Assembly (NCBI GenBank): GCA_001643675.2
Contig: LSRY02000022.1
Coordinates: 558,001-622,000 of the forward strand
Length of the DNA stretch: 64,000 nt
DNA from: Monocercomonoides exilis PA203
Taxonomy: Eukaryota > Protista > Preaxostyla
Direction of reading: 5' to 3'
The notes below the pieces were generated by a model, which had not been told where the DNA came from, did not search any database, and saw nothing but the letters and a program-made list of their open reading frames with translations. The position numbers were made by a program, and so were the translations under genes. Each line of letters starts with the position of its first letter. The first letter of the stretch is position 1. Shown here piece by piece: positions 11,773 to 61,560 of this stretch.

Positions 11773-14700
11773 GTAAGTCGTCGATGCTGAGAAGCTCACT
11801 CTGCCAGATGGGACTGGCTCCACCACACTGGGCAGACATATTGAATGAGAAGGATCTGATGTACTCGATCTCGATTGACTGCTGAGAGGAATGTGATTGT
11901 GCAGATGAAGCAGAAGCAGATGATGATGATGATGAATCAGCTGTCACAGCTGAATTCGGTGTCAACAATGCAAAGTTCGTGAAAGTGATGAGCGGTGCAC
12001 CCATCTCCAGCCCTTGGTCAGACGGATCACTCGACACAATCAGCAGAGGCGAGTGGGAAAACCGTGCATTGATAAACAAGACAGCCTCAGGAGATATTCG
12101 CGTGCCTGTGAACTCTGCAAACTTCGGATCCATCACCCGCTCCTCCCTCGTCTCCAGAAGAGCCAGCCGGAACACCCTCGCCACGGCACCGCGCACAAGA
12201 GCGTGTGGTGAGTGCATCAGCAGCTGCAGTTAAGGTTCAGTGATGTCTCTGTCGCAGCAGATGGCTTCGGCTAATTCGTCGCTTTTGCGCACGTGGTGCG
12301 ACAGGGCAAAGAGGAAGGCGACACAAGAAGAATAAACATGTGATGATGATGATGATGATGATGAAGCAGATGAAGCAGATGAAGGAGTCTGAGATAAACT
12401 GCTTGAGAGATAACTCAGAAAATGATCAAGTGATATCAGACAGCACGGTAGAAGTCTGCTTTTGACATTTTGTTCACGTGAAGAAGAAGAAGAAGATGAT
12501 GATGAAGATGATGATGAAGATGATGATGATGAAGAAGATGCTAATGTAACTGTGCATGTAACAACAGATAAATACGCCTCCATCCACTTTTCATTCATCT
12601 CTCTGTTTTGTGTGCACAGCAACTCTTCTGACTTGAGAAGCAGCCAGTTAATCCCAATCTATGTCAAATGCTTCTCCAAAAGCAAAAGATATGACTTATG
12701 CTCAGCAACATCTCTACGAATGGAATAAAAACAGGTCAAAGCGAGAGAACAAAGAGAAGAAACGTGGCTGGGTTCTTTTGTTGAAGAAAAAAGAACATCA
12801 CAAAATGACTGCGAAATGATCGAATAAAATGCATCTTCTGGTGAAACTGGAATAGATGGAAGCGAAATTGCGGAAAAGGATGAATCCGAAGCAAAAAGAG
12901 GAGTCGGTTTCGTTCCTTTCAAAATCATTAGAATAGAACGAGATGCAGACGCAGACGGAGAAGGGGAATTATGCAGACAAGAAATGAGAGAGATCAGCAA
13001 CGCCATTGCAGCTTCACGCTGAACCGGAGGCAGCTCATCTTGACAAGCACTGTTACCATCCAGAGGAGCAAGAGAATACAGCGACTTCACTGCATATGTC
13101 CACTTTCCTGACTGCTTTGACAGAGAAGGGGAAAGAAAGTCCTGGCAGCGCTGAGGGTAATTGGCAAGGAGGAGCAGCCAAGAGCAAACAGGAGACAGAA
13201 AGCAAGCATCTCGCATGAAGGCGAACAGAGGGACGAATTGGATGGCTTTCTTCTGCTTGGCAGGCAGAAGATCGAGCAGCGATGTGAAGAAGAAGAAGAG
13301 CTGCTGGAGCAGAATGGAGAGGTGCTGCTGTGACAGAGATGCGTCTGTTTTGGACAAATACGCTGAGACTGACTTCAGAACAGCCGAAAGTGCGCTGAGG
13401 AGCACGTGGAAAAAACACAGGCGCAGCTGAGTGTCTTCGCAGCGTCAAAGAAAGGCCTTTGCAATCGACGGAGCGCCCGCAATGTTTTAAGCTCCCAGAT
13501 TGTTCAGCTCCGCAGCAGTCATTGCATACACTGCTGTGGATGCAGTTGAACTCTTCTGATTTTGCTTCCGGGAAAGGCAAGCATCCCACTCTTTTGCTTC
13601 TCCGCTGAGCTACTCAGTTGTGATGTGCTTGATCAGTTTGAACGACAAGTCTGGTGAGCGGACAAGAATCTGCTCCAACTCCACGCTCCACTGCACAAAT
13701 AGTGCATGATGCACTGAATGGGAGAAGGTGTGAAGCAAAAAACACACAGAGAAAAACATAAAGTCGCGAGAAAAGGTCGGATCTGCCTTTGGCACATTCA
13801 GGACACGCATAGCCAGAGAAGCTGATGCAGATGAGGATAAAGATGATGAGCTTTTGCCAGCAAGATTCGTTTTAATCAAAGATGAGGTAGGTGTTGCAGA
13901 TGAAGCACCAGTTGATAATCTGGTGCTAGTTGCAGCTGTTGCTGCTTCCTCTTTTTCAGCGGATTGTTCGCATCCAAACTGCTCAAACAGCCTTCTCACA
14001 AACGCAAAGAATGTGTTTGAGAAGATCTGCCTGTCTCTCACGATGCCCAGCTGCCTCACCAACACACTCTCATCCACACTGCTCATCCCATCGAAAGACG
14101 ATTTCATTGGCGAATGCTCTGTCAATGCGGAGTCTGCGAACACATCGTCATTAAAAGGAGAACGCATCTTCAGCAACGACGTGTGGGGTGGTGGAGGATG
14201 CATTGCGATAAGAGGAAAAGAGCCGATTGCTTGTGATACAGTTGGAGGCAGATGGCTCCCTCATGTCATTTCTTTCAGCTTTGCCTGTGGAATCTGGCTG
14301 AGTAGCTGGCGTTAGAGGCTCCAGTCGTCCACAGGCTGCTTCCGCTCGTAGATGAGGATGCATGCCGAGTACGGCTTGACCGTGTCTGCCTCGCTCAGCA
14401 GGCTCAGGCGTTTTTTCTTGAGAATCTCGGGATCAATCAGCGCGGTGTCGTACAGGAAGCTTTCGCCAAAGGCCTCTGCTTTCAATGTCTCCACAGCAGG
14501 AGAAGGGAGCAGCCTAACTCTGTCGTAGTTGAATTCGTACCACTGGTGCGGAGCATCTCTTTCCCGCACAAATGAGATGTAGGGTCCAGCATTGGCTTTC
14601 CCCAAGTGGTTGATGATGCCCTGCAGACGGTATTTGCAGTTGCTCTCCGGACGCAGCTTGTCTTTGCTTTCGTCGTTATGCGGAACCTGCAGATTCTTCA

Positions 14701-40060: not shown

Positions 40061-43000
40061 TAGGCCTTTGCGACAAGGTATTTTTTCGTTATGCGTGTCG
40101 GTCGATAGAATGAACCTGTGTCGAGGATTTTTTTTTTTTTTTTTTTTTTTTGATGAGAGAAAAAAGGATTCTTTTTTTATCAAATTAATCTGTAATTTTC
40201 AACTTGTGTCTGAATTTCTTTCTGACTGAAAAATCCCATTTTTTCATGATCAAACAATAAAATTTGACTTTTTCGATAGTTATTTGTTGATTAAACGACA
40301 ACTTAGAGGGCAAATAATTAAAATTGCAAAATTTAGAAAATAAAACTGTTTATTAACAATGGAAGATGAAACAAAAACACAAAAATTTTTTATCAAACCA
40401 AAAATAAAAAAGAAATTGAAGTGTGATGGCAATTGTCAGATCTTAGAATATTTATAGTATAAGTTCAGACAATTGAGTTATATAAAGTGAAGAAAATTGA
40501 AGCTATGCTATTTATTTTTATTTCATTCTATCTGTTAATATATTTCTGCATCTTTCAATTATCTTCATTTAACGCTGTAAATAGACTATAGTCAGTTCAT
40601 AACAAAAAAATTGAATTAAAACATGACATATGCAATTGAAAGTTGATGAGTTGAAGCAAAAATTGAAAAAAAGTATTTCTGTTATTTAAAGAAGCAGTAG
40701 AAAAAGACGAGTTGTTAACGTCACAGAGCATCATCCTGTTGCTCTTCATTCACTCCTTCCCGTCCTCTTTGTCAGCGCTGTTGTATGTCTCAAAAGAAAG
40801 AGACTAGATGCCCTACACATTGCCGAACATGACTCACTCTTATTCAGACATCCACTTCCGCTAGCTTTAAACAGGCCATGCAGATCTTTCAGGAGAAAAA
40901 GAAGGCAGAGACGTAGAAGAAAAAGACTGGAACATTACTGTCTGTTGGAGTTGGTGTTATAATTGTTGGGGCAAAAGCTGAAATAATGGAAATGATATTG
41001 ATGATGTGCTTATTGAAAATGTTGCTCCTGAAAGAGCTTTGTCGAATGTTTGAAGAGAATTGTTGAAGAAGAAGAAGCAACTAGAGTGAGAAAAAAAGGT
41101 GGATACGATAATTGCTGATTATTTTGTGTTAAGACTGCAGAATTTAATGGAAGCAATTCCTTAGAAAACAATGAAATGGACACAGTACATTGAGAATGAA
41201 GACACCTTGAAAGAATTGATATAGATTGATAAAACGCAATTGCTGTTGATGAACAGATCGAACACTTTGACTGATTATTTTGTGCATATGTGTTTTTTGG
41301 GCGCTATCTGTGATGGGAGAAAGAATAGGAACATTGCAAGTTGCAGAAAGAACTTCAATCCTATGAAAAGTTAACTGAGAATCAAAAGTGGATTGAAGCA
41401 AAGCTGGAGTATCTAAAGATTCACTCCTAAAAGTTGCATCATTAACTTCCTCCTTATTTGATGCCAGTTCTCTTTCTCTCTCTTAAACTCTTCATCTTCA
41501 TCTTCATCTTCCTCTGTATTTCGTCCTCTTCTTTCTCCAGCGCATTTCCGGACACCAGAAAGCGCTGCACATCTGTAAACTGTATGCCACCTCAATCTCT
41601 GCCATCTTCGTTAGCAACGCAGCTGTTTGACCCAGCGCCTCAATCTGCTTCTCATTCAGCAGCTTCCACATCTTTCTTCGGCTTGTAGTGAATCTCTGTA
41701 AACTTCTCGTCCTGCAGCCTTAACACTTCTTCTTTTTGCTCAAATCGAAGAAGGCTCTGCTCGGCCTCCTCCTTCTTCCGCTTCTTTGCAAGTTTCTTCT
41801 CTTCCTTCCTCAACTTCTGCTTTTCATGATCAACAATTCTCTTCTGCTCTTCCCTCTGAATCTTCTCAATGGACTTGTTTTCTTTCCCTTCTCTTTGCAG
41901 TCTCCAATTACTTCTGCTTCGCTTCCATTGTTGCATCTCTCTGTTTTTCCTTCTCTTTCTCTCGCTGTTTCTGAATCTCTCTTTTTCACTCAGCCATTCG
42001 ATCTCCTTCGTTCACTCACCCTGCTGCGAGCTGCCACAATCTGTTGTTTTTTGCGTCTTATTCGTCTTTCGAGTCATCTGCTTTTTCTTCATTTGTTTCT
42101 GTTTTGCCTTTTTTGTTCTTTGTGTCATCTTCTTCAATCGGTCTTGTAAACAAAGCATCTTCTCTTACCCCTCCCTCTGACCATTTCTTCCGCTCAATCT
42201 TATCATTCCTCTTATTCCTTCAGAAGTACTTGTTCATTGCGATTCCCCAGATCTCCGCAAATGAATACTTCACATTGTCTCTCATGCACTCGTCATGTGT
42301 CTTCTGCTCTATCGTTTGCAGATTCCGCACATTCTCCTTCATGTCGCGCATCCTGCTGCTCCTCAGTCTCTGGCTGGTGTGCTGCCAGATCCAGCTCTCT
42401 CGCTTCCTTCTCACTCTTGCCAGCACATTCTGGATCGCACACTGCAACAATTAACGAAGCTGCTTCAACCCCACTTTCTGTCCGATGACAATTGTGTCCA
42501 GCATCCAAAGTCGAGTCGAATCGACGTTTGCAGATGCAGATGAGGGAGAAATTGAAGGTGATTGCAAAGAGATGTGTAAATCATGGATGAAAAAGATGCA
42601 ACAACGTTTGAAAAAGTTATAACGGGAGATGAAGATGGAAAAGGCAAAGAAGAAAAGGATGAATTTGATGATGAAGATGCACTGCTGTTTAGAGGGAAAG
42701 CCGTTTGAGGAAGAGTTTGTGTCTTTTATCGTGTCACTTCAGTTCTTGCCTTCAGTTGCTGATGCTACTGTTGTTAAATGAATAACTGATAACGCAGTTG
42801 AGTGCAGTAATAGATAGGTTTTGTTTTTCTATTTATGAATTTGCTTCGCTCAATGGAATAGACTTTTCGCAATTCGACAACAAACTGAAAAGAGGTCGGC
42901 TCACAATATATTGTGCACATTGTGAATGTGATGCAGATGATATTGATGGAGAAAGTGTTTACGTTGAAGAAATAGCAGAATGATGTGATGGTTGGTTTAT

Positions 43001-43066
43001 TGAGGGAGAAGTGGTTTGAAGGTGAAGCTTAAGAAATAAATTAAAAATTTTTGCTGGAAATGTTTC

Positions 43067-43106
<40 letters not shown>

Positions 43107-44233
43107 GAAGCAATTGGATGTTTTGCAGGTTGTTTTGAACCTGTAAAAGCACTTCCTGTCACTGCAGCTGCGATTTGGACCAAAAATTATAGCAAAATTA
43201 GATGATGTTCTGGGATGTGATTGATGTGATTGATGTGACAGAAGAAGATGAAGAAGAAGAAGTTGGATTGGAATGAGAAAAAGAGGAGATGTTGGAAAGA
43301 AACGAAGGAGAGGAGTTCATTGGAGGTGGAAGTGGAGGAAGAGAAGAAACAGAGGAAAGAACAAAAAAAGAAAATAAATGATCACCTTACAGATCGCTTA
43401 TCTTTTTTTTTCATAATGTTTTCAATGTTAATTCAGCTCTCTTTATCAAAATTGTGTGTTATTTCTTTCTCTTTTTTCCTGAATTACAATTGAATTCAAA
43501 ACATCTCAGAATTTATGCTTCTTCATTTTATTCCAATTTGTGTGAGATGTTTGCGTGTTGCAATTGAATTATGATGTGTAAATTATCGCAAATAATGTTA
43601 AATCTTCATCTTCAGTTTTGACAATTCAGTCAAACTTCATTACTTATCCATCTTATTTGACAATAAAATCAATTATTCCTACCAAACCTTAAGTGCATGT
43701 TCTCCCTTTTTTGACCACAAATTTGATGTTTGTTTGCAAAACAAAAAATATACTATTATTATGGAACGCAATCGAAAACTGTTTTTTTATTTATATCATT
43801 AATAACATTAACATTTGAAAGGAGATGAAATGTTTTGCAGAATGAGGTCTTGGACTGATTATAATATGTGTCAGACAGATAAACACTCCTTTTCTTTTGA
43901 ATTCTTTCAATTTTTCAAGTGAAAAAAGATATTTTTGTAATAATAGTGATGAAAGTCAATTTCTTAATAAAAAGAAATGTTTTCGAAAAAATCATATTTA
44001 TTCGACAGATAGATCTTTTCGAACGATTGATCTATGTAGTTCGACTGATCTCGAAAAAGATCTGTCGATAACCCATTGAAATTATTAAATATCAATAAAT
44101 TAAATATTTGTTTGTTGTTATCTTATAAAAAAAAAAATAAATTAAAAAATAAAAAATAATTGAATAAAAATGGAAAAACTTAATCTTGATTTGTTGTTTT
44201 TCCGGTTATCAAAAAAAAAAAAAAAAAAAAAAA

Positions 44234-44275
<42 letters not shown>

Positions 44276-44342
44276 TAGCTGACTGTTTTGTCGGTCGACT
44301 TGTCGAGCCATGAAGAAAATGTCGGTCTGTCGCAAAGGCCTA
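40061..44342. mobile_element. Non-autonomous 4.3-kb hAT element with gene-fragment cargo
   Basis: Perfect 15-bp TIR TAGGCCTTTGCGACA (40061-40075 / 44328-44342) and perfect 8-bp TSD ATGAAGAT (40053-40060, 44343-44350). No transposase motifs seen inside. Confidence 0.92.
41420..43183 (-). pseudogene. Decayed host-like coiled-coil gene fragment inside the hAT element
   Basis: GC-elevated coding-like sequence; ORF pieces 42220-42450 and 41652-41936 are K/E/R-rich and broken by stops and shifts. Confidence 0.55.
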
Positions 44343-50700: not shown

Positions 50701-51529
50701 AGACGATGATTCAATTTTTGAAGACAGAAAAAAGAAAAAAGAAAAAGCGTCCATATAAATGGCTTGGAAGGATTTGTTGTTTTGTCGAAAGAAACTGAAA
50801 GTGCAAACAAAGATTCAATAAGTTGATTTTTGACTTGGTTTCTTTCAGATCAATGCGAATCAACTAAGCCTTTGTGACTTATAATGAAATTTTGTTTTAA
50901 GTCAGTCAGTGACTTATAGATAATTAATCAAAAAAGATCAAAAAATTATGATCATTCCGGTACCATAATATAGAGAGAAAAAATATAAAGAAGATTTCTC
51001 TTCGCTAATACTGTGATATTAATTCAAAATTAGCATTACATCATATTCAATTTTAACATTTTTGTCTTTTTAACTTCTTAAAACTGTTGATTTCTAGCCA
51101 TTTTGTACAAACTGACAATTTGTTTTTATTTCATTGTTTTCATTTCATCCGTTTGATAATTCATTCTGATTTTTTAAATGCTTTCTTTCTTTTAAACAAA
51201 CTTCTTTGTTGTGTAACATTAGAAAAAACTGCTAATCTTGGAATACTTTTTTTTATGATATTTAAGATTGAGAAAAATTCAACATTTCATTGCTTATTGT
51301 TATTGGACAACAATCAAAATGAACAACATACAGAACAATAAAAGAATTTTTGATTTAAAAATTAAATGTTTAGTCCATTTCCCCGCAGAAATGCTCTTTT
51401 ATTATCAATTCAAAATAGCACTTATATCTCTTTTATGAGACGCAATCTTCTTTAATAAACTTTATTGTTTTCGCTAATTCATCTGTTTTTATTTTCATTT
51501 TTCATCTGCTTGTTTCAATTTATCGTTCA

Positions 51530-54500
51530 AAGAAATTCAGCTCCTTCTTGTTCCATAGCTCAAAAATGATCGGCTTTTTGAGCAAATCGAAATCTTTTTT
51601 CAAATGAAGATATTATCTTAGCATTTCAGAAGGAGCTGCCAACTTGTTATTCAACTTTTCTGAAAGAAGATTCATTTGGCTGCCTATGTGAAGCAGTAGT
51701 CTCTTTGCTCAGCATCTTTTGTATTCTTTATCAACTTTCCCATTCTGGAGGCGGAGAAGCAAAGATAAGAAGGCGGCAGAAGATGATAAAACATTTTCAT
51801 CTTCATCTGAGCCTGCAATTGGCACTTCGATTGCCTCAGCGGTGGCTGCATCATACACATAGGAAGCAGCAATGGAAGAGTTCGAGAGGCATCCCTCGAA
51901 GCGTCTGCAGTGCTAACACAAGAAGCTGTTTCTGAGAGCGCTGCAGACGCTTCGAGGGATATGCTGAGGCACAGCAAGCTGCGCTATATGGGGGCGTTGT
52001 GCATGCAAAAAATGTGGTACTTTCAGAGATGCTTTCCGTTCCACTGGTGAATCCACTTCTGTAACTTACAGCATTTTCGTGAACGAAATTGCTAGGCAAG
52101 TTCATTTTTAAGGAGGCAGACATGAATGCATTTTTGTCTATCAACAATCAATTTTTATCCTTCACCGGCGATAAGCAATCTCAGTTGTCGAGGCGTGAGG
52201 TTGTGAAATTGGACGAAGAAGTGAAGAGGCTAGGAGTTGCAGTGTGTGAAGTGGGGGAGATGGTAGAGAAGGGAATGGAGGAGGTTTGTCTGAGGATAGA
52301 GGATGTGGTTCTTTCTCCAGCAGAGATTGCGCTGTTGAAACCTGAGGAGCGAAAAGAAGCAGAGGAAGGAGAAAGTGGAGGCAAAGATGGAGAAGAAAAT
52401 GAAGGTGATGGGAATGAGTCCAAAGGCGTGTATCCAACAACATACAGAGAGTTTGCGGAGAGAATCAAAGAGAACCAGGGGAAGCTGTAATACGCGATGG
52501 AGCTGCTGGTTGTAAAGGCGCTTGGGTTGAGTGGGCTGAGGTTTGTGAAAGCGGAGACATGTCCAGTGATTTTTTCAGAGAGTCGCCTGCCGCAAATGCT
52601 GAACAATGCCCTCACTGTGCGTGTTTACTGTGTAACATAAAAATACGCGAGAAATAAGAATGTGATTACAGGCTAAGAATATGAGTGTTTGAATATTTAT
52701 TCAATGAAAAGTCAAATTGAAATAGCTAAAGATGTGGAGTAATTGCAAATATCTGTTGATCGTATGACAATAATTGAGGAAAAAGACAAATTCATTGAAA
52801 AGGTTGTGTGAGAAAGATGTTTTTGTTGTTCTGAGTTATAAGAATAAGAAGAATAAGAATAAGAAGAAAAGGAAGAAGAAGAAGAAGAAGAAGAAGGAGA
52901 AGAAAAAGAAAGAACAGATTTGACATCGATGAAGGTGAAGAAGCTGTTGCAGAGAGAAAGAGGATAGCTGACTTGAATCAACATGTTCATTTTTGCCGGC
53001 TCAGCAGACGGAGAAAAAGGAAGTTTTTTATTTTTGTGTGGCAAATTAGCTTCATCATCATCAGCATCAGTTAAAAACGCATTTTCTGAAACAGAATAAG
53101 GAAGGAATTTCAAGTTATTAACGATGTTGGTGGGGAAGAAAAGAAGCATAAGTCCATCGAAAACGTGAGAATATCATCCAAAGTGAAGAAAGGAGGAAGA
53201 AAACCCTGGAGAGTGTGGGAGATGTGGAGCTGGACGAGAGAAGAGAGAGGGAAGAGAGAGAGAGAGGAAGAGGCAGCGCAGATAGAAGGGAGCTGGGGGT
53301 GATGGGGCTTGGAGTTGTCAAGGGAAGATGAGGAAGAAGAGGAAGAGGAAAAGGAGGAAGAGAAAGAAGAAGAAGAAGAAGAAGAAGAATTAACTTGAGC
53401 TGCATCTTCCACCACCACATTGACCATTGTTTTGAGATATTCAAACACTTTGTAAATGACTAGACTCGCTGGCTGTTTTGAAGAAGATGAAATTTCATCA
53501 TTGAATGCTGCATCACAAGGGAAAAGTGAAGAGGCGACGAGGAAAGCTGCTAAAAGGTCAGAGGAGAGGGAGAAGAGGAACCAGCATACGAAGCTGAGAC
53601 ATGATTTCACAAAGGACTTAAAAGAGAGAGAGATAAATTTGGAGGACAAGTCTGTTGCTGCTTCGAAGAGATCGGTGCGAGTGGCTGGGAAGTTGCGGTG
53701 GAGGAGGTGATTGTTGGAGAAAGATGAAGAGGAAGAGGAAGAAGAGGAGAAAGAAGAAGAAGAGGAAGATGACAGTGTCAATGCTAACAAAGGAACATGC
53801 TTCGCAAGCAAAGGCGAATGGAGAATGCTACTCAGTCTAAGCAATTGCTTCACCTGTTTTGGGTGTGCTCTTATCGATTGATAATGTGAATACATCTCTA
53901 ACACGACACTCACTGGAGGCACAGGATGATGCAGAACTTTCATCACAGCAAAGAACAAGTGCACAAGAAGCTTAGAAAACTAGCCACACCCCATCGATGT
54001 TGGAGATGTGAAGGAAATTTCTTCTTTTTCAATTGCTTCCCAGAGCAGATTGAGCTGTGAGTTGCTCTCCACACTAAGTTCCTGTTTGTTGTATTCGATC
54101 TGCACATTCAGAGTGGACGTGCAGTTGCTTCCACACGAAATCTTCACATCCACTTTCTCTGGGACGATGTAGCAGAGCTGCTGAAGGAGAAGCATCACAC
54201 TCTCTGCGCTTTCGCGGCTGGCTTCTTTTGATGGCATTTCATTGAACGAGAAGTTGTTGAGCTGCTCCAAAATGAAGAAAAAAGCAGATTTAAGCTCTTG
54301 AAGACTGGAAGTGGAAGGAGGATCGCTTGGATGAAGGGGCTGGAGGGAGGGGAAAGGCAAAGGAGGAGGAAGAGTTGAATGGGATTGGGTGTAAAGAGGG
54401 AGAGAGTAGAAGAGAAGCGAATATGAGGAAGAAAATGAAGGAGATGAAGAAGGAGAAGAAGGAAGAAGAGAAGAGGGTTGTGAAGAAGGAGAGGGAAGGC

Positions 54501-55503
54501 TTTTTGGTGGATGTGAGAGGACAATTTTGAAGTTGTTATAGTTTTTGTTGTTGCTGTTGGATATTTGAGAGGATGAAGAGGAGGAACTGCTGGATGATGA
54601 ATGAGATAAAGAAGAAAACAGAGAAGAAGAATATTATGATGATGAATCAGTTAATGATTTAGAATCTAAAATGCTTTTGTTTGTATTATTGTTGTTATTT
54701 GCATTCACAATGTTATAAGCTTCACTTTCAGATCGATTGTTCCACATTTCTTCTGAACACATTTCAAACAACATTTCATTTTGTGCTTAAAATTTTGTTG
54801 TGTGATGGAGACGAGGAAGAATAAATGAAGAAGAAGAAGAATAAGACGAAGAGGAGGAAGATGACGATGACGGAGATAGAGAAGAGGAAAATGAGGATGA
54901 CAATGCTTTTGAAGAAGCAGTAGAGGAAGAAGAAGAAGAAGAGGAAACATTAGAAGAATCACCAAAAAACGAGCAGCACTTCTTCACATCCCAGAGGAAA
55001 CTATGCACATCTGAAGAGAATGTAAACACACGAGCCAAGCGAAGCGAAGAAGAAGGCAAATATTTTGTGAGCAAATAACTTTGCCTGCCAACAGTGAGGA
55101 TGTCAAAGAGAAGGGGATATTACGACAAGCAGCGCTTGAGAGAGAGGAAAAAAGAGGAAGCTGTTCTTTCTTTGCAGAAGGAGCGGAGGACGATGCTGAT
55201 TTGTGAGGTGCAGAAAATGAAGGAGAGAGCATCGCTAACAGCAATGGAGGCAGATGTGTGGAAGGGGTGGAAGGGGTGGGAGAGGGAAGAGGGTTTTAAT
55301 AGGGAAGAAGAAGAAGAGGAGGAGGAGGAGGAAGAAGAAAAAAGAGAAAGAGAAGAGTTATTGTTATTGCTACAACCACTCAAACACCACACGGTATAAT
55401 CTCTGGGAGTTTTGTGTGATTGATCAAACATTCGCACAAAGGATGAATACAAAACTTCATCATCTTCTGACAAATAAGCTATTGTCTTTATGAAAAAGAT
55501 CAT
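51530..55503 (-). pseudogene. Poly-Ser-rich host-like gene of unknown family, decayed, inside the hAT element
   Basis: ORFs 55120-55503, 54787-55074, 53980-54360 and 53110-53964 share one frame separated by TAA/TAG. Frameshifts at about 53150 and 51980. Confidence 0.7.
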
Positions 55504-55607
55504 GATTTTTTTCCTTATTTATTGAGATTTATTTGAAAGTTTCATAAAATGAAATGTGTCAAAAAAAACTTAGCTGAACAAAATTGCAAAAAATGAATAA
55601 AGAAAAA

Positions 55608-58448
55608 CTATATTAAAAGCAATGCGTTGAGAGTATTAAGTGAAAGAGAGTGTCTGTTGTCTCCAGTTATTCTTTTCATCCTCGAGAAAATTCGTTCACA
55701 GCTTGCTTTGCTGAACGGTGATGAAACAAAAGAAAAACAAATATTTGAATATATTGTGTGATTGATACTTTTCTTTGATAAGTTTATATAATAGATTTGA
55801 GCATAATCTTCCACAACAGAACTTGGCGATGCCCTCATCTCACTTTGGTATATCTTCAGACACAACTCTTTCAGCTTTTGATCTTCTTTAAATAAAACTG
55901 AGTTTATAAATATTTCAAACCTTCTTTCCATCCTATTGGACCAATTTGAGGTGATGCATGAAGATATATTGAGGCACATTTCGTCTTCTTTGTCAGTCGA
56001 AGATGGTGAGATGATATCGAAAACTTTGCTTGCAAAAAGCAATTCAACTTCATCATCTTCCGATTCAATTGCAACATATGAAGATTCATTCATGTCGGAA
56101 AATGAGTCAGATGATCTTGATGATGATGTTAAAAAATATGATGAACAAGACGAAGATAATGATGGAGATGAAGATGATGAAGATGATGAAGATGATGAAG
56201 ATGAAGATGGAGATCTCATCACTGAATCAAGAATATGAGCTGCTTGAAAATCAGGATCTTTCAAATCTCTTTCTGCCAACAAAATTCTTAGAGGGTCTTC
56301 TTCAAAATCATCCGATTCGTTTTCAAATTCCTCTATTGTTTTTGGTTCTTCTTGCTGTTGTGTTTCACTTTTTTCGACTGTATCTGCAATTCGAAGGAGT
56401 TTGATAATTTCTGCACATACGTCATCAAGTTTCTTATCTTCAAACATATCATCAAAGCAATTGAGGTACTGAGACATTGTGAAAAAGCTGACCTGTTCAT
56501 CTCTAACAGATGAATGAAACCTTTCCAAAGCAAGATCTAAACTATCATTTGATAAAAAGAAATTATACGTCAATGAAAAAGGAGAAGAAATATCACCAAG
56601 TTGATTTTTATCCAAACTGGAAGAAGAACAATTGAATATATTTGATTGCAATGAAGATGAATAAGAAGAATTTGTTGAGTTGAAAAAATCTGAGTGTGAT
56701 GAAATTTCCTTTTGTTGTGAAAACGAGGAATATCTCATTCGAACTAATCTATTGTCTTCATTAATATGACCTTGTTGAAGAATTGTTTTTTCCGTATTTG
56801 AATGCTCACTGATTGAATGGAGAAGATGTACTGTTTCTCCTTTTGAATCCAACTTTTCTATAACGTGTTTTGCTTCAATAAATGAATTTGTGAATTCATT
56901 TCTTATGAACTTTTGAATTCCAACTGGTGTTAAAGCGTGTGCCAGTGATATCATTTCACCTGTTTTTCCAAATAAAAAATGGTTATGCATCAGAACAAGA
57001 ATATTAGTAATTGCATTTTGCCAATTTGAAGATCTGAATCTTTGGAAGGATTTGATCCCATATAAAATTCCAATTGTTTGAAGGATCATGGGGAAAATTT
57101 CACCAAGTTTTGTGTGATCGTTTTCCAAAAAAAGTTGTAGCCTGTGAATAGGAAATAACAATAATTCCATTAATACTGAATTTAACACTTTATCTGTAGA
57201 AATCAACGAATGTTTTAAAATGTCCTGGCAGTTTTTCCTTATAAATGAGCAAATTGGGTACAAACAAAGCCATCTCGTTTGAACAAAAGAAGGACATTTT
57301 TGTTTTAGTAACTTTCTGATTGCCGAAGAATGGGCATATTTTGAAAAAAATGTTAGATCATTCAATATTTGTCTAAGAAAATCAATTTTAATGAAAGCTT
57401 TTGAAACAACTAAATTTAAAAGATGGTAAGAACAATAAATAAAAAATGAAGCAACTTTAATATTTGATAGCAAAGATTCTTCATATTCTACAAGTGATGT
57501 AGTGAAGTTTTCCAGTGCTTTTTTCTGAGGTTTTAAACCATCTGAACAGAAACACCTAACACTTGCATGTAATGATTCCAATTCTTTTTTTATGATCCAG
57601 GCTAATTTTCTATAGTGACTAGCATTGAAACAAGGAGGATAAACTTTCCAAAAAAAAGTCGTAGTTTCTAGTGACAGAGGAGCAATTGTAACAACGGTAC
57701 ATTTTAGTCCTCCAACTATTCCACCATCCATCATAACGCAAATGCATTTTCCGAATAATTCTTTCGCTTTCTTTTCTTTTGCGATTTCACTTTGAGAAAT
57801 AATCAAGCTGCTTAATTTTCTACATGTTAAATATGGGAATATTTTTGTGAGATGTTTGTCTGGATTTTCTTGAGAAATTTTTATTAAGGCAGTTATGAAA
57901 TTGTTAAATTCTTTCGACGATGCAGAAGCTATGGAAATGTTGCAATGACTCACAATTTACGCAAATAGAAATTCCAAATTTGTGCTTGTGTAGTTAATTG
58001 AATTATCAAATTTTTTGGTTGGATCATCACGATTTTTAATCACAGAAGAAAATTGTTTGAAACTTGTGATATTTTGTGTTAATAAAATTGAACAATGATG
58101 ATTTTTGATTCCAGCATAATTTTTTCTTCCACTGACACCGCAAACTGCATCTCCTCTTGCATTTGGACAAAAGAATTGTTTGTGATATTCCCTAACTGGC
58201 GCTCCGCATTCGTTTGATGGGATGTAAGATATCCATAATTTTTCGTTTACAACTTCCAACGTGACTTTTGTTAAAAACTCATTTTCTTTAACAGGATGTT
58301 TGTAAACTTTGAATGATTTTTAGCAAGAATCAAAATAAAAGATATTCACAAGCACATTTGCTGCTTTTTCATATTGTTCTACCAGAGTGAGGCTCAAATA
58401 ATCACATCCGTTTTGTTTTTATTCATCGAGTTTTCTCATATAGCTCAT
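55608..58448 (-). pseudogene. hAT-superfamily transposase with in-frame stops in its 5' part
   Basis: Motifs VMMDGG, CSDG, CSYHLLNL (CxxH), QTRW and ASCERIFS (hAT C-terminal dimerisation motif). ORFs 57957-58259 and 55608-57953 are in frame across one TAA. Confidence 0.92.
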
Positions 58449-59955
58449 TGACAAAAAATGAAAAATTAAATGTTTAATTAACGAATGCAAGGAAAAAACC
58501 AGTTAAACCATTTTCAAATCTGTTTGTATATTTTGAAACTCTTTCATTAGTGAATCTTTGTTTAAGATGATGGGTATTTACATGACTTTTTTGACTGAGA
58601 CACAAAAAGATCAACAAGTCACTGACTTGGAAATTCCCTAATTGTTGATCTGGTCATTTCCCATCATTAACAAAACATTCAAATAGATTTTTTTCTTTAA
58701 AGTTATGATTTGGATATTTGAAATTCATTCAAACGATATTAGTGAACAAATTTTCAAAATGAACGAAATATATTCCAAATTAAAAAAATATTGCTTTGAC
58801 TTAAAAAAATGAAAAAGTCAGTCAGAATCGTAATATTTATCATTCAAAGTCAGTAAGTCACAAAGGCTTAGAATCAACTTGTCTAGTGAAGTTGTCATTG
58901 AAAAACAAACATAATGCAAATTCTATTCCATTTTAAATATTTACAAAATGGGACATTATTTATGTTATCATTTTTTTCCAAAAAAATTATTCTGTTGTTG
59001 GAAATCACAAGATTTTTAATTATTTTTCCATCGTGCTCATGAATAAAAAATGAAATAAATTTATATGCGCGAAACACTTTGATTAATATCTTCTTTTTTG
59101 TTACAAAACCACAAAAGATCGAATTATTGTTTTGTATCACCATTTTTATTAAAAAAGGAGATTGAAACAATATTATTTGATTTATTGCTGTTCATTGTTA
59201 AGCTTATCTTAATACAATGATTTTCTAAAGAGAAATTACACATTTGGAACTATGTTTTGTTTTTGTATTCAAGCTAATTGTTGTAAGACAATAATCCAAT
59301 ATTTTTTTTTATTAAATCTCATACTTTGGAGTAATTGTTTTTGTTTAACAATAATCTTTCAAAACCAATGAAAATCTTTTTATATTTAAAAAAAAAGAAA
59401 ATGCAATATGCTTGATTTATTAAATAAGCTTGATTAATTGTTTTTCAAGTCTGTTTTTTGCCTGTCTTGAAATAAACGAGTGCAATTATGCATTCGTTGC
59501 ATGCCTATCGTAAATAACAAGACCAAATTTGTTGAACACCGTTTCACTATCGAAAAAAACACTCAGTAATTTTCAAAGTTAAGAGAAAAGTTTTTAAACA
59601 GATTACAATCAAATAAATTATGCAGTGATAAGTGAGCATGAAAGAAATACGAAGTATTTTCTATGGGATTCGATTGAATAAGATAATTTTATCGCTTTTA
59701 TTCATACGCATATAATTTGTTTTCCAAACGATCTGTTATAAACCATCTTTGTTAGAAATATAAATTCATTGTTGAAATTCACTTCAAATGTTTCATCACC
59801 TTCATTTTCCTGTTCCAAAATGCATTTAATCAAACTTTATTAAATAAGTTATAATATGATTAAGTTTATTTGAAAAAAAAAAAGAAAAATTGAAAGAAAT
59901 AGAGAAGGAGAAGAGGAATACTAAATTTGTCATAATTCGATTATAGTTCATTCAG

Positions 59956-61560
59956 AATGGAGATTTATGAAGCGATCGAGTGGACTAACGAAAAAGCTGA
60001 ACTTAATGAACAATATTATTTAGAAACACGAGAGGAAGATCCCAGAGCTGAGTGAGAAGATCAACGCAGATGCGCAATGACTGAAGAGGTCGCTGATGGA
60101 GATGAAGGAGAAAGCGGAGCTTATTGATGAGTGTATTGAGAATGAGAAGATGCACCGAATTCAGCATTGCACGGCGATCAGCAGAGAAATCGATAGATCC
60201 AAAGCAAAGTCAAAGGTTCTGCTTGCCATGTCTTCTTCACTGGCTTTTACTGAAATTGAAATGGATCCGTCCTTGATTAAGATGATTCCACCTATGGGGT
60301 TGCGTTAAAAGTGCCAGGAGAAGTAAACTGAAATCATCAACAATGAAAGAACTGTGATGCTTGGGCCAGACCTGAATGGGAAGGGGGTTGTTGCAAAAGT
60401 GTGGAGCAGGGTGAGTGTTGCGAGAAAAATAAACAGCTATGGTGGAGGAGGTGGTGGAAGGGCAGATGCAACGGTGCAGCAGAAGATGAACAAGATAGAG
60501 AAGGAAACGAAGAAGCTGATGTCGCAGTTGAAAGTGAAGGAGCAGATGATCTGAGAGCAGAAGGTGCTGTTCAAGGAGGCGATTGAGAATCAGAAGAAGA
60601 GCGATGTTGTCAAGAAGGTGATGATCCACGGTGGAGAAGCTATTCTAGGGAACATTGCAGAGATGTGGCTGTTTGGGGAATTTGGGAGGGAGGAGTTCAA
60701 TGAAGACAAGCTGTCCTTCTTCTTGTTCTCAGACACGGTGCTTGAAAGGGCAGAGGAGAAAAAGATCAAGATGTTTTTTGGTAGAGGTCGAGAAGATACA
60801 GTCAAAGATGGGAGTGGTAGAAGCGTCTGTGTTTCTGGTGTTTTTGAAGAACCGCTTTTTGGCAGAGACAGCGAAGCGTAAAGAAAAGATGATGAAGGTG
60901 CTGTATGATGAGATATGCAGTGGCGATCCATCGACTTCATCGACATCATCATCAACATCATCAACATCGTCATCGCCAGAGGTAGTGCGCAGAGGGATAA
61001 CGTACTCGGAGCTCGAGTCTCATCTGTGTGCATGCTATCCGCAGACGCCGCAGGCGCTGTCGCTGCGGATCTTCCGGGATGCGTACCGGCAGTCAGGCTG
61101 CTGTCTGCCGTCGTTTGCGTCTGTGCTGGAGGCGTGCCAGCGCAACGACTTCTTCACGCTGTGCCTGAGGCTGCCGGATGTGTGCGACACAACAGACCGG
61201 TGGGCTCCTCTGAAAGCGTCTGAGAACAGCGCAGTTGTGAAGACGGTGAGCCAGCACATTGCGCTATTTAAGCCTGAACTGGACGACTGTGTGCGGGTGC
61301 TATTGTGGGGTGTCGGAAGGTGTTTCGGCTGGGCTGAAGTGGAGGGTTGAGGCGGTGCAGCAAGCGGAGGGGAAGAAAGAAGGGCGGTGGGTGCTGTTCC
61401 GGACGGTGAGGCTGCTGGTGGAGCTGGTGGAGCTGCAGCTGTGGATGAATGAGGCGGAATGGGTAATATGAATTCGGCTTCTGCAGAACGACGGGAAGTG
61501 TGTGAAGCTGTTTCTCTTTACAGTCGCTTTACATATAAAAGGTAAATTAGGTGATACATT
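59956..61560 (+). pseudogene. Decayed host-like gene fragment (coiled-coil N-terminal part, unknown family)
   Basis: GC-rich coding-like stretch after a CAG acceptor, broken into ORFs 60096, 60354, 60564 and 60655 by stops and shifts. Confidence 0.6.

Follow-up and report, generated by a model that had tools for sequence, protein, structure and literature searches.

A genuine copy of a cut-and-paste hAT transposon, about 8 kb long, occupies positions 50857-58878 of a 64,000-nucleotide stretch of the Monocercomonoides exilis PA203 genome (C17:558001-622000, hereafter the window), and we consider it highly probable that this hAT acquired host DNA by transduplication, that the loaded element then transposed, and that its passengers have since decayed. 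The copy in the window, designated W, was compared with other copies throughout the M. exilis PA203 assembly (82.3 Mb in 101 contigs, based on Oxford Nanopore Technologies, ONT, sequencing). L- and C-numbers denote other loci and contigs, and the sisters of W are L031, L032, L033, L034, L036, L039 and C43. W coordinates run in transposase orientation, on the reverse complement of 50857-58878, such that window position equals 58879 minus W position. In window positions, the features of the element, which is framed by a target-site duplication (TSD) and terminal inverted repeats (TIRs) and carries part of a foreign open reading frame (ORF), are as follows.

50857-50864, no strand: TSD GAATCAAC, left copy, identical to the 8-mer at 58871-58878
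50865-50881, plus strand: TIR TAAGCCTTTGTGACTTA at the end far from the transposase start, complementary at 17 of 17 positions to 58854-58870; the same 17-mer is found in the sisters
50882-51730, no strand: subterminal element backbone, of which the outer ~570 bp are common to all full copies
51731-52931, plus strand: decayed piece from an IQCH-like ATP-grasp gene, matching about aa 638-1043 in its intact relative and antisense to the transposase; it may extend to about 51590
52840-52910, no strand: (AAG)n/(CTT)n microsatellite (Tandem Repeats Finder), the meeting point of the two fragments
52840-55469, minus strand: pseudogenised fragment of a giant Ser-rich host ORF (C39:582891-585593), oriented like the transposase; identity to the parent is 86.9% over 2725 bp
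55470-55607, minus strand: 3' flank of the transposase, element backbone with a chance ATG at 55503; the sisters continue with shared backbone here
55608-58306, minus strand: hAT transposase, predicted exon 2, with a private TAA at 57957-57959; identity to the intact frame of L034 is 91% over 908 aa
58307-58448, minus strand: predicted 51-nt intron and 91-nt exon 1 (ATG at 58448), both damaged in W; the gene model is a prediction
58449-58853, no strand: 5' subterminal region with a conserved block at about 58535-58680 and AAGTCAG motifs
58854-58870, minus strand: TIR at the transposase-proximal end, TAAGCCTTTGTGACTTA reverse-complemented
58871-58878, no strand: TSD GAATCAAC, right copy, matching the left copy

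The original prediction for this DNA held that a perfect 17-bp TIR and the 8-bp TSD GAATCAAC bracket 8 kb, and the letters at 50857-50881 and 58854-58878 agree with it. Seventeen bp lies within the length range of hAT TIRs (about 10-25 bp), and the terminus TAAGC fits four of the five positions of what we take to be the hAT YARNG-like motif. The 14-mer TARGCCTTTGYGAC occurs four times in the window against an expectation of 0.02, and 138 times in the genome as compared with a single occurrence of a control pattern. Its exact TAAGCCTTTGTGAC variant marks 21 genome ends, which give nine paired elements of 4.7-14.7 kb. Perfect 8-bp TSDs flank seven of the nine, the cargo-bearing L031, L032 and L034 among them, with one more matching at 7 of 8 positions; these perfect TSDs are all different, indicating independent transposition events. 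At the end far from the transposase start, window positions 50865-51433 align to L032, L033 and L036 at 83-89%. In addition, AAGTCA/TGACTT is enriched about 29-fold in the terminal 300 bp at both ends, the pattern expected of putative subterminal transposase-binding repeats. A search for an empty-site pattern gave no match, and tRNA and Rfam family searches found none within the element.

The DNA beyond the transposase had been predicted to be a single host-like gene of 4 kb. Its host origin held up, a parent having been found, but the single gene did not, as this region is a mosaic of two unrelated dead fragments. The compositional part of the prediction was also sound, with a G+C content of 0.42-0.46 across 51500-55500 vs 0.28-0.35 in the transposase, and with a Ser-rich frame opened by the ATG at 55503 on the transposase strand. 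Outside hAT elements, the genome search returned a sole locus matching the first fragment, C39:582891-585593, at 87% identity. This locus lies within the intact parent gene that had been proposed as a check, a single-copy, intronless and uninterrupted ORF of 5845 codons (C39:576844-594378; 17.5 kb, 26% Ser; loci L049, L043, L050, L052 and L053). As the parent has no intron in the captured stretch, the presence or absence of introns cannot separate DNA-level from RNA-level capture.

Homology to the parent starts at an identical base (rc 11167) in L031, L032 and L034 and ends at 14110-14114 in W, L031 and L034, and these shared junctions indicate one capture of 2,948 bp. Both junctions lie inside TCT/TCC runs that are present in parent and element alike. 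The C39 fragment was thus captured once and inherited by at least four full copies, and the different perfect TSDs of these copies demonstrate that the loaded element transposed. A fifth, rearranged remnant of the fragment, adjoining an IQCH-like piece, lies at C32:386-387 kb, and L033, L036, L039 and C43 are without it. At the downstream end of the first fragment in W, within 52840-52910, homology to the C39 parent stops and homology to the poly-Glu run of the IQCH gene begins. At the other end, W is missing 241 bp from the start of the capture as well as about 100 bp of backbone. This private deletion fuses backbone to parent codon ~2929 and places the backbone ATG at 55503 in frame with the fragment, which accounts for the predicted start of a second gene about 105 bp past the transposase stop: a same-strand ATG is indeed found at 104 bp, but it is a chance backbone ATG brought into frame by the deletion and not a real start. 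What at first looked like a breakpoint shared by all copies, immediately beyond the transposase stop, was dismissed as an artefact of using W as the query, since the sisters share backbone beyond it.

The captured frame is no longer intact. In W it runs for 2.4 kb with four in-frame stops (55120-22, 54787-89, 54634-36 and 53980-82), at which the parent codons are CAA, GAA, TCT and TTG, and then changes frame near 53113-53160. The stops are private by lineage: W has four, L032 four others, and L034 others again, one of them in common with L031. We counted differences at codon positions 1/2/3 in 491-499 non-repetitive codons, obtaining 35/26/78 between parent and W, 49/42/88 between parent and L032, and 62/54/73 between W and L032. 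The corresponding three-point branch lengths are 11/7/46.5 for the parent, 24/19/31.5 for W and 38/35/41.5 for L032, such that the third-position excess of the pooled comparisons comes from the parent branch. Taken together, these counts show a strongly constrained parent gene and element-borne copies that drift neutrally. On each of the three branches the third-position length is 6-9%, which fits one capture and clock-like divergence thereafter. A first dN/dS (nonsynonymous to synonymous rate) calculation had suggested constraint on the cargo; NG86 inflated dS in that calculation, and the three-point branch counts overrule it.

In another oxymonad TAA and TAG are read as sense, and all five in-frame stops of W are TAA or TAG, none being TGA. 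A similar alternative code was rejected for the present element, as the stops are private substitutions of CAA, GAA, TCT, TTG and, in the transposase, CAA, and the sisters have TGA stops. The restriction of W to TAA and TAG is consistent with AT-biased mutation and not with recoding.

As to the identity of the parent, a Pfam search of the C39 ORF found no domain, and a HMMER search of a 500-aa non-repetitive region against 1.84 billion representative proteins found no real homologue, its only matches being two weak TPR/HEAT-repeat look-alikes. A word-based protein search with the ORF was blank, having been swamped by poly-Ser words, and is hence uninformative, while protein-atlas leads were weak and pointed to alpha-solenoid scaffolds. 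The C39 ORF is a giant orphan gene under purifying selection, possibly an alpha-solenoid.

The second passenger derives from an unrelated gene. Its intact relative (L051:1390-6009, minus strand; C25:2068389-2073008) encodes 1539 aa with an IQ motif and the ATP-grasp_IQCH domain PF24923 (1e-28, 100.8 bits). A tblastn comparison of this gene with the element gave E-values of 3e-58 over aa 724-1043 and 5e-12 over aa 638-739, crossing several stops. The longest open piece of the fragment is 52089-52490; Pfam had no match to the window's fragment by itself, and the stretch has no overall codon periodicity. Its strand was not settled by tblastx frame scores, which were undecided, or by codon periodicity, which is strand-blind; we assigned the fragment to the plus strand because it is only on the plus strand of the window that the frame belongs to a long intact gene, open for 1553 aa at C25:2070375.

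The IQCH-like fragment is present in W, L031, L034, L036, L039 and C43 and was not found in 20 sampled ends of the TAGGCC family. Its protein identity to the intact gene is 54-73%, indicating that this piece predates the C39 capture and reached the entire TAAGCC subfamily by descent. Nucleotide relatives run to hundreds in the genome (1038 first-look candidates), protein searches with either strand of the fragment returned more than 180 loci each, and PF24923 fragments were found at 96 loci or more, mostly with stops or short frames. We accordingly give the number of dispersed IQCH-like fragments as at least 96-180 loci; five IQCH-like loci were examined in detail. Some of the dispersed loci share hAT backbone (L045, L046 and L048) or a segment termed module X with the TAAGCC subfamily, and at least part of the dispersal is therefore hAT-borne. 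Such fragments may be entered among the unclassified repeats or be mistaken for a gene family. Module X itself, about 1.4 kb long (L036:3936-5358), occurs in several hAT copies without the C39 fragment, in either orientation and often near IQCH-like pieces, and was also seen in L032, L039, C43, C7:1583222, C21:139168, C9:1438360 and C69:1683594.

The element belongs to the hAT superfamily, as predicted, on the strength of its 8-bp TSD, its dimerisation domain and its match to a known transposase. Domain and Hermes searches used the exon-2 frame or sister frames. The hAT dimerisation domain PF05699 scored 18.9 bits in W, under the 21.4 cut-off, and at the same position 20.0 bits in L031 and L034 and 22.4 bits in L033, the last exceeding the cut-off. 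In a phmmer comparison the intact L034 frame matched the Hermes transposase with an E-value of 8e-5; the aligned motifs, which also occur in the W translation, are CSnHLLN/CSSHLLS, TRW/TRW and SCERIFS/SERTFS, which do not include the two catalytic Asp residues. Protein-atlas neighbours, which serve as leads only, were all hAT/ZBED clusters with scores of 0.86-0.88. No Pfam match to a BED-type zinc finger was found in W or the sisters; a Cys/His-rich stretch, CPNARGDAVC...HHC, is kept in all transposase copies.

The W frame at 55608-58319 on the minus strand is open except for the TAA at 57957-57959, a codon that reads CAA in all seven other copies. In L031, L033 and L034, an open model of 934 aa results when exon 1 is joined across a GT-AG intron of 51 nt, a two-exon structure that is predicted from conservation and frame. 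In W, a stop interrupts exon 1 and the intron no longer has its GT donor, so that, with the TAA, the W transposase gene has at least three lesions. The exon 1 stop, the lost splice donor and the CAA-to-TAA nonsense codon therefore make W non-autonomous, and its present-day mobilisation would take place only in trans, through intact sisters. Between intact lineages the transposase has a dN/dS of 0.28-0.31, with codon-position changes of, for example, 41/39/94, indicating that, as its copies diverged, the family was active and under selection for transposase function.

These observations can be placed in a probable history in which the TAAGCC subfamily first gained the antisense IQCH-like ATP-grasp piece, after which one sublineage gained 2.95 kb from the middle of the C39 ORF in a single event. 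Trinucleotide repeats may have served in this capture as sites of template switching or of microhomology-mediated repair while the gap left by excision was being repaired, a step that fits the location of both capture ends in (TCT/TCC)n microsatellites. In this history the loaded element kept transposing with its transposase under purifying selection while the passengers decayed neutrally, and W then lost about 350-550 bp at the boundary between backbone and cargo and gained the exon 1 stop, the donor loss and the CAA-to-TAA change.

Several points weigh against this history. Between element copies, third positions change slightly more than the others (e.g., 62/54/73 above), leaving room for slight past constraint on the cargo or for mutation bias. 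Furthermore, the C39 ORF has no detectable homologue outside this genome, and its status as a host gene rests on its single-copy state, its openness over 17.5 kb and its constraint rather than on orthology. The mechanism of capture is read from the junction sequences only, and single-base frameshifts in an ONT assembly may be errors; the stops, being substitutions, are unaffected.

A further possibility, compatible with transduplication, is that the cargo is active, in that read-through from the transposase promoter would produce sense C39 RNA and antisense IQCH RNA, which would regulate the parent genes or give chimeric proteins, as has been proposed for the fragments captured by Pack-MULEs. 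The C39 fragment does follow the transposase in tandem, with the IQCH fragment antisense to it, and open stretches of 280-390 aa are kept in several copies, but the cargo evolves neutrally and gathers stops, and we judge such a role improbable. The reverse direction of transfer, in which the C39 gene took its segment from the hAT by exonisation or domestication, appears very improbable. It draws on the want of homologues elsewhere, which makes the ancestral state uncheckable against orthologues, and it has to contend with a segment that is in frame within a 5845-codon ORF and has no TIR or backbone remnants beside it. Moreover, no stop is common to the W, L034 and L032 lineages, and the ancestor of all three therefore probably had the parent's frame open; only four or five subfamily copies carry the segment, and the IQCH piece is older and more widely spread.

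We give still less credence to the downstream region being an element-specific accessory ORF2 that is present in every copy and has no host parent. A long Ser-rich frame on the transposase strand, 104 bp past its stop, together with the third-position excess of this frame in pooled comparisons, might be read in that way, but the intact 17.5-kb parent exists and the element holds only an internal 2.6-2.95 kb of it. The fragment is found in only four or five copies (L033, L036, L039 and C43 being without it), each copy has its own stops with neutral element branches, and the last ~1.2 kb is a different gene on the other strand. Equally remote is a separate transposable element nested in the hAT: although a 4.4-kb repeat, of which the genome has at least 20 copies, is nested in the C43 copy and the IQCH-like piece is highly repeated, neither fragment is bordered by TIRs or a TSD, the borders being microsatellites. 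The first fragment is otherwise single-copy, and the second can be aligned to the coding part of a cellular-type gene that is intact.

Transduplication by a hAT, the reading we prefer, has precedents. It is true, as the original prediction stated, that hATs normally encode only a transposase, yet transposase-bearing hATs with captured host genes have already been described (PMC6710886). In the Dothideomycete fungi Pseudocercospora fijiensis and Pyrenophora tritici-repentis, hATs carry a transduplicated histone H3 (PMC6710886, PMC3538342). As in the present case, these are full-length hATs (with 18-20-bp TIRs and an 8-bp TSD) in which a transposase is combined with captured host coding sequence, the loaded element multiplied, most of the passengers have been inactivated and purifying selection preserves the original gene. 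The fungal elements differ in having taken up a whole small gene, whereas here two internal fragments of unrelated genes lie in opposite orientation, and their inactivation involves repeat-induced point mutation (RIP) whereas here it is ordinary drift, in a metamonad protist. The Pack-TYPE elements of plants (Pack-MULE, Pack-CACTA and Pack-hAT) carry host gene fragments as well (PMC8903248). They too hold such fragments, sometimes from several genes, between TIRs and are mobilised with perfect TSDs; unlike them, since they are non-autonomous by definition and have no transposase gene, the present family has a transposase gene, damaged in W and intact in L031, L033 and L034. With Hermes, Ac and hobo it shares the 8-bp TSD, short TIRs, subterminal repeats, CxxH/W/ERxFS motifs and a C-terminal dimerisation domain, but those elements carry a transposase only, without host cargo. 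The present transposase also diverges strongly, scoring 24 bits to Hermes, and at 934 aa is longer, with insertions rich in Ser, Asp and Glu.

Gene capture by hATs is thus already known from fungi and plants, and no new kind of mechanism is involved here. What this element offers is a fully traceable metamonad transduplication in which the parent, the exact junctions, the age order of the captures, the later mobility and the neutral decay are all visible. The junctions suggest, without proving, that coding microsatellites could be entry points for capture. A broader proposition, which we regard as doubtful, is that hATs in M. exilis, whose host genes abound in poly-Ser (TCN)n tracts, capture host DNA systematically by template switching at such microsatellites and have spread the pieces to hundreds of loci. 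The genome paper reports that repeats make up 46% of the genome and that 35% of it is unclassified, and hAT is unmentioned (PMC8767320). Were the broader proposition true, a sizeable share of the 35% of unclassified repeats, together with part of some seemingly expanded gene families, would be transposon-carried fragments and not paralogues. For annotation of M. exilis, the present case is a warning that Ser-rich ORFs adjoining transposases and many of the dispersed IQCH-like ATP-grasp "genes" are transposon passengers.

The prediction that copies of the clade carry different passengers was borne out. That these reflect repeated independent capture is only partly supported: the C39 piece was acquired once, for at least four copies, the IQCH piece is an older gain common to the TAAGCC subfamily, and the extra length of other copies is partly nested repeat. 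L033 is 4.7 kb long and has an intact transposase; beyond the cargo its sequence agrees with that of L032 at 98%, and it is most simply read as a deletion derivative. In the C43 element, 4.4 kb of the length is a nested repeat with at least 20 copies elsewhere. Overall, the variable middle of the family is a mosaic in which old captures are combined with deletions, nested insertions and, in L034, a small inversion. The nested repeat was itself noted at L040:5635-10000 (C43:451191-455556) and at C58:891535-895903, its copies (20 or more) being 3.7-4.4 kb long with 79-98% identity.

The TIR of W is related, as predicted, to that of the 4.3-kb element at 40061/44342, and the TIR is all that this neighbour (40061-44342) has in common with W. 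Transposases of elements with TAGGCC or TAAGCCTTTGCGAC termini are only 35-42% identical over the first 310 aa, and these elements make up a separate, though related, family. Ahead of the start of the W transposase, a non-coding block of about 145 bp (58535-58680), containing AAGTCAGTGACTT, is near-invariant in all eight aligned copies and may be a promoter or transposase-binding region. Just outside the element, window positions 60000-61500 are G+C-rich (0.45-0.60) with a strong positive GC skew and probably represent one more Ser-rich minus-strand gene, whole or fragmentary.

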